From Oculina patagonica (taxonomy: Eukaryota), in contig NC_135770.1 in NCBI RefSeq assembly GCF_052425735.1, positions 27,156,001 through 27,220,000 of the forward strand: a DNA stretch of 64,000 nucleotides, written 5' to 3'. This document shows, in pieces, positions 4,260 to 7,200 of this stretch. Position 1 is the stretch's first letter, and each line of letters opens with the position of its first letter. Both the position numbers and the translations under genes were made by a program. The notes beneath the pieces are model-generated. The model was not told where the DNA came from and did no database searches. It saw only the letters and a list, made by a program, of their open reading frames with translations.

Positions 4260-7200
4260 TCACTTGCGGCCTTTTTTCTTCTTTGGAACAATCCACGGGA
4301 ATCCCCGTCGTTTCAGAGTAGTACGGGGACCGTCAAACAAGGGGAATGCCCATTTTGCTTCCTTCACGCTGAAACTTTGAATCATGTCTTGAAGGGAACG
4401 GCGTGTGATCTCTCCCTGCTTGCACTCGCCCGGTATCTTCAGTTTCTCAGGCTGGACAGTTGTTTTTAAGTCAAGGAAACTGTTAACATGAAAAAGGCAT
4501 CGTTAGTATGTCCTCTGCAAGGCATAGTAATTCTAGAGGTTCCTAAAAAAGGGAGGGTATAAATTCCTCTTCAGACCAAATTTTGCGCTAATCCCATTTC
4601 CCGGCCTATTTTTGCACAATTCCCAGTCCGATTCCTATTTTTTCTTTGTGATTCTCAGTCTCAGTGACGCAAATCCCATTTTCTCAGTAAAAATAGCCTA
4701 AAATACAGTTTCAGTAAAGCAGCTATAGTAACGCAATTTTTAATAAATAAGATCATTACATAAATTTAAGTTTTCATTGTTTACTGTATGTCTTTGTCTT
4801 TTGACTTTTTGAAGTCATGTTCATGATAGTTTAGTTTGCCTTAAATATTATTCACGTTTCCCTAGTGGGGTATGCCACAAGCGGAAGAAACTACTTAACA
4901 CAGGGTTTCGTGGTTTTTTGGCTGCCGGTTTTTGGGCCGAGAAACGCTCTTCTGGATTTTTAGCATTTTCCTCATCATCTCGTAAACACCTCAAATTCTT
5001 AACAAGGTTATTAGATGTATTCACCAAGGTTTTTACATAGAGAGGTACTTTATTAGGAGATAAAACTCCTTTTGGTAGCTAGACAAGTACTACATGGCAA
5101 AATTTCCAATGCCAATCAGTTTTGCACCATTTAGTTCTATTGGTAAAGTTCAAGGTATCCTTTTATTCCTTTTGAAGAAACGTTTTAAAAACATATTATA
5201 TACCTTCCTGCTATAGCGGAATTATTGGTTTTCACGGCAAATTTTACAGGAATGCATTGATCTCCCGACTCCAGTGTTATGACGCCAACACCTGCGAAAT
5301 CGAATATTAAATTTGATTAATATTTCAGTCCTCAAAACTGTCTCTAATAAGCCTCTACAACCTCGACTTTAGTATAAGCTGTATCTCTATTCTAAGCACC
5401 CCCCCCCCCCCCCACTCCCCCCGCACCTCGTTAATTTCCATGTTGCTAAGCTGAAGCCTGATGCTAAACAGTGAAACTATAGGTACGTTTTTGTTAAGAT
5501 GTGTTATTATGTGCGCTAGCGTTTTAATGATCTGAAGTATACGTAAGACCAGGTCTCTAATAACACCCCCTCTTTCCCTTTCTCCCTCAAAAAGACTTGA
5601 CAGATAAAAGCCCCCGATAGTTTAATTGAGGTACCGTATATATGATCAGTCCCAATAGTAGATCAGTTGCAGTTTATCTATCTGCAATTTAGACCCAAAG
5701 AAACCATAGAGCGGTTTACAATTGAGCATCGCAAAATCAAAACCAAAGTATGCACTCTGGCCAATCACAAAGGACCCGAACTATCCAGTGAGCCAATCAC
5801 ACTTCGAAGTAAATACTTGTAGCCAGTACAAAGCGCGGGAAAACGTGTGTGAGCTATTCCCTATAAAGGGCGCGCGGAAGAGAGAGTTCAGGGACTGGAC
5901 TAGCTTTGGACTTACTTCTGGTTGGCTGAGAAAGTGGCGCGAGCTTTATAAAATCAATCATGCAAAACCAAAGCAAATGCGAATTACTTTCGACACTCAA
6001 GTGAAAACAACTATAATACAGAGAAAATTAAGTATCAGTAGCACTAAAACACAAAAAACTTGATTTGGCCCCTTGGCTGACAAACATCCAAACCGAATCA
6101 GGTAAAAACCTTCGCCAATATAGATGTGGAGGCAGAGCTGACGTGAATATCTTGTAAAACCAAAACTGTCGTTATCCTTACCTTCCTCGCCTTGAAACGA
6201 GAAACAGTCAACTGAGACACCTTTATATCCAAGTGAACCTGTGGCGATAAGCTTATGAGCCAAATCCTCAAATTTGTCAGGCATTATTTTTTCCTCGAGT
6301 GGCTCACTGTAACATTCTCCTTGGACCTTCTCGTAAAGCTTGCCCGGTAGCCGAAAAACCAAATATGAATGAAATATGTTACGTCCTAGCTAACATCCGC
6401 GTCGTAATTAGGAACCGACCATTATTAATCTTATAGGGTGGGTGGGTCATCTGATCCCCTCGTCCGGTTTTTTTTTTTACATTAAGGAAGGAAATGAGAG
6501 TACTGTCCCAAACATTTATGACGCGACTAGTAAACTCCATCTGCGTAAATCCAAGAGTCCTTGTGGGTAACTCATAGAACAGGGACTTGCCATCCCCTAT
6601 AATTTCTGAATCAGGTCTCCCTCGACTCTTCTCCTTTGCGAGAACAACAGAGGGGACTAGCGATGTTAAAATGTAATTGCTATTTATAGTGGTCATGCAC
6701 TTAGCTTCGAGATAGCTAGTTTGCAGGCATTCCACTGAAACAGAGGAAACAAATATTCTAAATGGACATAACATGATTAAAAATCCCAACTGGCAGGAGG
6801 CAGGCCAGTTGGCTATATACAAAGCGTGGTCGAGAATTTGAACTCGGGACGACCGAGAACTGAACAAATCCAGCTAGTGACAGGGTGGAGGTTTTGAACC
6901 CTGGACCTCCGGATGTATTCTATCGAAAATAAATCTTCGGAAAAGAAGAGGTGAGTATTACCTGATTACCAAAGCAACCCAGAGTCATCATCATTGTCAA
7001 CTAAACTAAAGCTAAAGCGTTTCAAAAAACTAAACGGAACAAGAAAGGATATTATCTAATCGTTTGAAAAATGTTTTCAGTAACAAGCAAAATGCCGTCC
7101 TTACCCCTTTGAAGTCCATTATCAAAATTCCTTCAGCAGTCTCTTCCTGCATTATTTGAAGATTCAAATCTAAGTTGAATGTTATATCAATTGTTTCAGG

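Follow-up and report, generated by a model that had tools for sequence, protein, structure and literature searches.

Ependymin-related proteins of stony corals carry a convertase-type GFPW repeat tail: predicted peptide precursors viewed from an Oculina patagonica gene

The gene and its C-terminal tail

The window analysed here is a stretch of 64,000 nucleotides from the genome of the stony coral Oculina patagonica (contig NC_135770.1, positions 27,156,001 to 27,220,000), and the subject of this study is a six-exon gene on its minus strand, at window positions 4260-7887, whose last 47 codons specify a tail lying beyond an ependymin-related domain. The gene is O. patagonica LOC144635712 / ACROYT_G041584 and its product has 235-237 residues. 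It belongs to a family of stony-coral proteins in which the domain is followed by one or more units consisting of a pair of basic residues, the motif GFPW and a variable remainder, an arrangement that would suit a precursor of secreted peptides.

Minus-strand translation of window positions 4257-4496 reads IPGEC, KQGEIT, RR, a run of 28 residues, KRR, GFPWIVP, KKKK, G and RK, followed by the stop codon. This confirms the string quoted in the original prediction, which had been made from the letters of the window alone and had proposed an ependymin-related protein with a prohormone-like tail, and the same tail is present in both public models of the gene, P0009 (RefSeq) and P0029 (GenBank). The span of interest, 4260-4403, extends from the stop codon (4260-4262) back to the RR codons (4398-4403), and exon 6 (4260-4479) holds this tail together with the last strand and the last Cys of the domain, with no stop codon intervening. 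The surrounding DNA (window 1260-10902, 9643 bases) matches O. patagonica assembly GCA_052425735.1 (CM126647.1) at every position, and a tblastn search with the gene model detected no second copy of the gene within the 64-kb window.

When exon 4 is taken to begin at 6338, the six-exon model has GT/AG at every junction, including an AG acceptor at exon 6, and it differs from P0009 and P0029 only at the junction between exons 3 and 4. In each of two tandem paralogues located elsewhere in the genome, the exon 4 acceptor is a canonical tag placed directly before GGAAAG, which encodes a conserved Gly-Lys (L003 12312-12357 and 3318-3363). In the window gene (6338-6350), GGCAAG is preceded by CG, and an AG is not reached until 6 bases farther downstream, in frame. 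The model built on the canonical AG loses the two conserved residues Gly-Lys; both public models retain them and therefore imply a non-canonical acceptor. This ambiguity has no bearing on the tail. The features of the gene are collected in Table 1.

Table 1. Features of the Oculina patagonica gene, in window coordinates
Feature	Position	Strand	Basis or remark
Whole coding region	4260-7887	minus	six exons; GT/AG junctions; exact match to public assembly
Exon 1: start codon, signal peptide, pro-segment, first conserved Cys	7800-7887	minus	
Signal peptide, residues 1-17	7837-7887	minus	17-residue hydrophobic leader, by inspection
Short pro-segment ending KR	7816-7836	minus	
Exon 2, conserved FPKQLSGRLY	7671-7705	minus	exon model and invariant alignment columns
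Exon 3	7105-7224	minus	exon model
Exon 4	6182-6344	minus	model exon 6338-6182; 5' end 6338 (sole canonical AG acceptor) or 6344 (both public models, CG acceptor)
Exon 5, carries conserved C-I-P	5204-5291	minus	exon model and alignment
Exon 6: domain end (Cys codon 4422-4424), whole tail, stop	4260-4479	minus	translation
RR, domain/tail boundary	4398-4403	minus	second R and next S at least 90% conserved in family
Linker, 14 residues, counterpart of family linker S-[IL]-P-x-M-x-H..H-L-K-x-A-M	4356-4397	minus	alignment; His replaced
Decayed first repeat unit K-W-A-F-P-L-F	4335-4355	minus	aligns to KR-GFPW-I of relatives
KRR, basic site ahead of intact unit	4305-4313	minus	translation, family comparison
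Intact unit core GFPWIVP	4284-4304	minus	translation, family comparison
Cationic end, amidation-type Gly-basic	4263-4283	minus	KKKK 4272-4283, then G-R-K 4263-4271
Stop codon TGA	4260-4262	minus	nearest ATTAAA at 4129, 130 bases downstream

Domain and repeats across the stony-coral family

The N-terminal part of the protein is, as the original prediction had it, an ependymin-related domain with a LolA-like fold, although one belonging to a divergent subfamily; this reading is right because profile searches, structure prediction, structural comparison and the cysteine pattern all agree. PF00811 (Ependymin) matched all six full-length members that were scanned, with E values of 2e-6 to 7e-4, over profile positions 5-128, with the match running up to the last Cys, at scores of 20-28 bits (28.4 bits, E 2e-6, for P0009) that lie under the Pfam gathering score of 32.3. 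Exon-by-exon scanning against Pfam gave no match even at E 10 for the five longer exons, the pieces being too short, and phmmer found no match to exon 4 among the sequences of the Protein Data Bank (PDB). A profile built from 19 family members (alignment A2) matched the beta and alpha chains of the sponge protein EPD-BCP1 in the PDB over the whole domain, with E values of 5e-6 and 1e-5, respectively. The AlphaFold model computed on the family alignment has eleven beta strands between residues 30 and 190 at a predicted local distance difference test score (pLDDT) of 85-94, and Foldseek ranked EPD-BCP1 and the frog, human and mouse EPDR1 structures first (E 2.5e-10 to 1e-8), followed by LolA and VioE; the top structures were 8i34, 6lxx, 6jld, 6jla and 6e7o, with target-normalised TM-scores of 0.57-0.78. 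The cysteines of P0009 are C28, C92, C148 (in C148-I-P150) and C184, of which all but C28 show little or no variation in the family, as does P150. The pattern fits that reported for the ependymin family, with Cys at alignment positions 23, 94, 148 (with Pro 150) and 186 (PMC6280359), P0009 having been matched to the published description rather than placed in a joint alignment. The Acropora and Montipora members (P0026, P0061 and P0066-P0070) lack both the N-terminal Cys and that of the C-x-P motif, where they have Lys, and keep the other two; the joint loss of the counterparts of C28 and C148 is predicted to be that of a disulfide pair.

Canonical ependymin-related proteins end soon after their last Cys, as had been assumed: the EPD-BCP1 chain stops one residue past the aligned position, and the median length of the family is 213 residues (PMC6280359). 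In the window protein 53 residues follow this Cys, and in its relatives 24-108, so that the coral proteins share neither the length nor the ending of the canonical family. AlphaFold gives tail residues 195-237 a pLDDT below 50, by which the tail is predicted to be disordered, and the domain is the most conserved part of the protein. At the other end of the protein, a signal peptide followed by a segment of 5-8 residues that ends in KR, RR or GR before the first Cys was found in 19 of 21 members, and in the window protein the KR of this pro-segment is a predicted second convertase-type site.

A search of the whole library seeded with exon 6 alone returned seven proteins, and further searches together with cluster look-up extended the set to about 45 sequences. 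Members come from Oculina (five paralogues), Orbicella, Pocillopora (two species), Stylophora, Desmophyllum, Porites (four species), Montipora and Acropora (five species), and the family therefore spans the robust and complex clades, the two major clades of stony corals. Limited word-index protein searches returned no member from beyond the stony corals, from which absence elsewhere does not follow. One sequence of unusual layout, P0014 of Pocillopora damicornis (429 residues), has two ependymin-like halves, the first apparently incomplete, and a decayed cassette at its end; it is either a tandem pair fused by annotation or a genuine two-domain protein, comparable to a 'dark' coral orthogroup with an EPD-BCP-like fold (PMC13044578).

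The tails carry one to five units of the form [KR][KR]-GFPW-x(2-12). In 26 proteins, some of them close relatives, the triplet FPW occurs 55 times in tails and never in domains. In front of it there is always a single residue with a basic pair, or K-Q, before that (KRG in 41 cases, RKG in five, RRG in four and other combinations in five), and in 51 of the 55 cases the residue after the basic pair is Gly. Basic pairs are 18-fold denser in tails than in domains (7.6 against 0.42 per 100 residues). The coupling of a basic pair to FPW is not a product of chance, and the expectation that the basic site before GFPW would be conserved among orthologues was borne out, with the addition that the site is repeated. 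There are four units in an Oculina paralogue, three in Stylophora and Pocillopora members and three to five in Acropora, where near-identical units of ten residues are each followed by KR, giving a period of 12 residues. Acropora proteins of 276, 288, 292 and 304 residues have three to five units, and between those that share an N-terminus the gap in length is exactly one unit; such one-unit differences separate two A. millepora isoforms as well as A. cervicornis from A. palmata (P0068, P0070, P0067, P0069 and P0026). They may reflect recent gain or loss of repeats, or differences of assembly or isoform. Units are also more alike within one protein than across species.

Between domain and units lies a linker that is conserved family-wide, starting with a nearly invariant R-S soon after the last Cys and in most cases including two His; this linker may itself serve as a peptide or a sorting element. 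This bears directly on the run of 28 residues between RR and KRR, which had been expected to be a drifting spacer. That description did not survive comparison with the relatives, as the first half of the run is the counterpart of the conserved linker and the second half is a decayed first unit. The window copy accordingly comprises one intact unit and one decayed one and has lost the linker His residues; decay of the first unit is seen in Orbicella too.

The original prediction had also taken the Gly before the terminal RK as an amidation signal and the lysine-rich end as part of a polycationic peptide, possibly an antimicrobial, toxin or signal. The Gly does recur: Gly, GK or GR closes the last unit of nine of 21 proteins, and the units of Pocillopora and Stylophora carry an internal G-RKR that matches the G-R-K of the window protein. 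It is not a general property of the family, however, being missing from Acropora units and from Orbicella, where amidation is therefore not conserved. As for charge, the 51 units comprise 31 neutral, 12 acidic and eight basic ones, that of the window protein being among the last, and the hydrophobic-then-cationic end is confined to an Oculina/Orbicella/pocilloporid subclade. A cationic antimicrobial peptide is for this reason not the common theme of the family, and the candidate reading of the whole family as cationic antimicrobials was rejected on the same census.

Transcripts, expression and genomic surroundings

A 940-base Logan contig (L002) contains the uninterrupted reading frame of a Stylophora-type member, comprising the domain and a tail of three units. 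Sequencing adapter occupies positions 1-52 and 809-940 of this contig, which is therefore an assembled library fragment whose ends are not biological. For many other members the whole protein is encoded on contigs of 0.9-1.3 kb, lengths that fit an origin from transcripts, given the 3.6 kb over which the gene extends in the genome.

Expression data are available for a single member. The cell atlas of Stylophora used XP_022790329 as its Gland1 in situ probe and describes a secreted protein with an ependymin domain that belongs to goblet-shaped gland cells of the epidermis (PMC8162421); this sequence is family member P0033, which has three to four units. A different Stylophora ependymin-related protein, XP_022794351, is part of the skeletal proteome (PMC7115838). 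The accession numbers of this protein and of a member of the tailed family, XP_022794354, differ by three, which points to canonical and tailed genes being clustered locally in Stylophora.

The two tandem Oculina paralogues mentioned above, P0005 and P0012, are separated from the window gene by about 1.4 Mb, and after them in the same segment come two genes for rhodopsin-type receptors (7tm_1) (L003 1053-24444; CM126647.1, 25.77-25.79 Mb). The proximity of the receptor genes may be coincidence; it would be a lead if the tails give rise to signalling peptides. In the window itself, the upstream neighbour of the gene is an intron-less open reading frame (ORF) of 869 residues with TPR repeats and a CHAT domain (10883-13492, minus strand), and its downstream neighbour is the start of a gamma-glutamyltranspeptidase gene (about 1260-2311, minus strand; annotated product 618 residues). 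Farther along, an ORF of 141 residues (15093-15518, minus strand) resembles, by eye, a fragment of a retroelement reverse transcriptase, and there are runs of N at 43817-44004 (188 bases) and 48338-48478 (141 bases).

A candidate peptide precursor and its alternatives

Cnidarians possess convertase, carboxypeptidase and amidating enzymes. We lean, with some caution, towards the view that the family consists of secreted pre-pro-proteins in which an ependymin-fold domain is joined to a convertase-type cassette of GFPW peptides that are released by cleavage. Such a protein would begin with a signal peptide and a short pro-segment that ends in KR, continue with the LolA-like beta domain and close with the cassette, which is predicted to be disordered. 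Enzymes of the furin/prohormone-convertase type would cut after basic pairs, at the R-S boundary and at the [KR][KR] before each GFPW unit, carboxypeptidases would remove the basic residues, and a Gly exposed in this way would be converted to an amidated C-terminus. The products, namely the ependymin-fold domain, a linker peptide and one to five peptides beginning with GFPW, would be released together; if the Stylophora member is a guide, the source would be goblet gland cells of the epidermis, which face the sea water. For the window gene the predicted product is GFPWIVPKKKK-amide (11 residues), or GFPWIVP (7 residues) if the Lys run is cut as well. All of the proteolytic and amidation steps, and co-secretion in Oculina, are inferred. 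Since GFPW is invariant at the N-terminus of the predicted peptides and the remainder variable, recognition by a receptor or other partner would fit better than a membrane effect driven by charge; the invariance could alternatively reflect a preference of the protease for what follows the cut.

Several observations weigh against this view. Neither a released peptide nor a cleavage product nor amidation has so far been observed. Typical neuropeptide precursors have no folded domain, and the sole member with expression data marks gland cells rather than neurons. When the units are parsed simply, only 13 of 51 have Gly as the last residue ahead of the following basic run or of the C-terminus, and Orbicella, the closest orthologue, lacks Gly at both ends of its unit; a relative among the Logan sequences carries FPQ where others have FPW. 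The linker is conserved as strongly as the units, which is not what a simple spacer would predict. The window copy is itself partly decayed, having a degenerate first unit and lacking the canonical acceptor of intron 3, and at 90% identity or above the cluster of P0009 comprises the two NCBI gene models alone, with no transcript-type contig; there is therefore no direct transcript evidence for the Oculina gene of the window. A neuropeptide in the strict sense was rejected as a description of the family, the member with data (P0033) being a gland-cell marker. The prohormone-like reading is in consequence partly supported: it holds in part and extends to the family, cleavage being the inferred step, and an antimicrobial action, amidation and a carrier with its cargo are possibilities within it.

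An unlikely but substantive alternative is that the tail stays uncleaved and acts as a multivalent array of short motifs, in which KR-GFPW would bind mucus glycans, membranes, skeletal matrix or a receptor, the basic pair would be part of the motif and copy number would tune avidity. Disorder of the tail, repetition of a short motif that combines basic with aromatic residues, and variation of copy number between species would all be expected of such an array, and association with a matrix is known in the wider family from the skeletal ependymin-related protein of Stylophora (PMC7115838). The basic pair, however, always stands exactly ahead of the motif and is avoided in the folded domain, and the C-terminal Gly or Gly-basic endings and the N-terminal pro-segment with its KR are features of convertase substrates for which a binding array has no need. 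Cleavage might, on the other hand, serve the domain rather than the peptides, the tail being a C-terminal pro-region whose removal would mature, sort or activate the domain (for instance by way of granule packing through the His linker); the GFPW pieces would then be by-products and GFPW itself would be kept as a protease preference. Conservation of the R-S boundary and linker, the position of the folded domain as the most conserved part of the protein, and the tolerance of unit decay in the window copy and in Orbicella are consistent with this idea, which we nevertheless consider rather improbable, as a single cut at the boundary would suffice, homogenised repeats numbering up to five in Acropora are hard to explain on this basis, and the recurrent terminal Gly points to the end of a finished peptide.

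Two further alternatives concern the Oculina gene, or its annotation. The cassette might be a relic in this particular gene, a diverged paralogue in the course of losing its peptide function, with a cationic end arising by drift. The degenerate first unit, the replaced linker His residues, the CG that now stands at the ancestral AG acceptor of intron 3, the cluster without a transcript-type contig and the existence of two better-preserved tandem paralogues 1.4 Mb away all speak for decay. We give this explanation little credence, as the reading frame is intact over six exons and KRR-GFPW is kept in the last unit, and Orbicella and a Logan relative also have a hydrophobic-then-cationic end, a sign that this end may be under constraint. 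That the tail is an artefact of annotation or read-through, the true end lying near the last Cys, can be all but dismissed: beyond the general fact that canonical members stop there, nothing speaks for it, and the tail shares an exon with the last strand with no stop between them, is found in two agreeing public models and in one frame with the domain on a cDNA-like contig, and has a motif conserved in eight genera.

The coral proteins can be compared with several known systems. With ependymin-related proteins such as EPDR1, fish ependymin and EPD-BCP1 (PF00811) they share a signal peptide, a beta fold of about 160 residues with a pocket, the Cys pattern including C-x-P, and secretion, and they differ in falling under the Pfam gathering score and in adding a disordered basic-pair/GFPW tail of 24-108 residues. 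Cathelicidins have a conserved cystatin-like pro-domain and one variable C-terminal peptide, among these the Trp/Pro-rich, amidated indolicidin; release is by elastase-type cleavage. A folded N-terminal part followed by a variable C-terminal peptide is likewise found in the corals, and the predicted product of the window gene is short, Trp- and Pro-containing, cationic and possibly amidated, but the coral family has basic-pair sites, repeats and mostly neutral or acidic peptides, and the fold of its domain is LolA/EPDR-like and not that of cathelin (cystatin-like). In fungal Kex2-processed repeat proteins and the alpha-factor precursor, short tandem peptides each follow KR and vary in copy number, as the coral units do, though these proteins belong to another kingdom and have neither an ependymin domain nor amidation. 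The preprohormones of cnidarian neuropeptides such as Antho-RFamide and GLWamide (PMC7523074) resemble the coral proteins in having a signal peptide, near-identical peptide copies, basic sites, frequent Gly and changes in copy number, but they have no folded domain and mostly carry Gly-basic after every copy, whereas in the coral family a structured domain precedes the cassette, the conserved end of the peptide is the N-terminus rather than the C-terminus, and most copies have no Gly.

The vasopressin/oxytocin-neurophysin precursors yield a short peptide and a folded carrier that recognises the N-terminus of that peptide. Origin of peptide and folded carrier from one precursor is the point of likeness, and recognition of this kind would explain the invariance of GFPW, but the neurophysin-associated peptide is N-terminal and single. 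The original prediction had envisaged a carrier with its cargo in the coral protein; this idea has no support yet because in the AlphaFold model the tail, with its pLDDT below 50, does not dock confidently onto the domain. An exocrine elaboration, in which gland cells would secrete the ependymin-fold domain into the mucus together with the GFPW peptides it carries, the domain would bind GFPW in the manner of neurophysin and the peptides would act through rhodopsin-type receptors, such as those encoded beside the tandem paralogues, as external signals to the microbiome, to larvae or to conspecifics, is a speculation to which we attach a low probability.

The combination of an ependymin-related domain with a convertase-type multi-copy cassette appears to be undescribed in the literature that we searched. 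There, no paper was found that joins ependymin with convertase processing, searches for GFPW-type strings gave only noise related to GFP, and the accessions and locus names of the members led to no paper; a paper on a Nematostella peptide library has no FPW peptides or ependymin. The 'dark' orthogroup mentioned above was rejected as a prior description, being a two-domain protein reported without discussion of tails, and is related background (PMC13044578). The catalogue of hexacoral neuropeptides includes no FPW peptides and no ependymin, and its script required at least three Gly-basic sites (PMC7523074); cnidarian peptide catalogues would miss the GFPW family because such scripts need several sites of this type. 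Ependymin-related proteins are widespread and secreted, and their functions are mostly unclear. The family described here offers a testable link from ependymin biology to a peptide cargo. It is also a concrete candidate wherever peptides that corals secrete for signalling, for defence or for the chemistry of their mucus are sought, and the exact masses of the predicted peptides can be searched for in existing or new coral peptidomic data.

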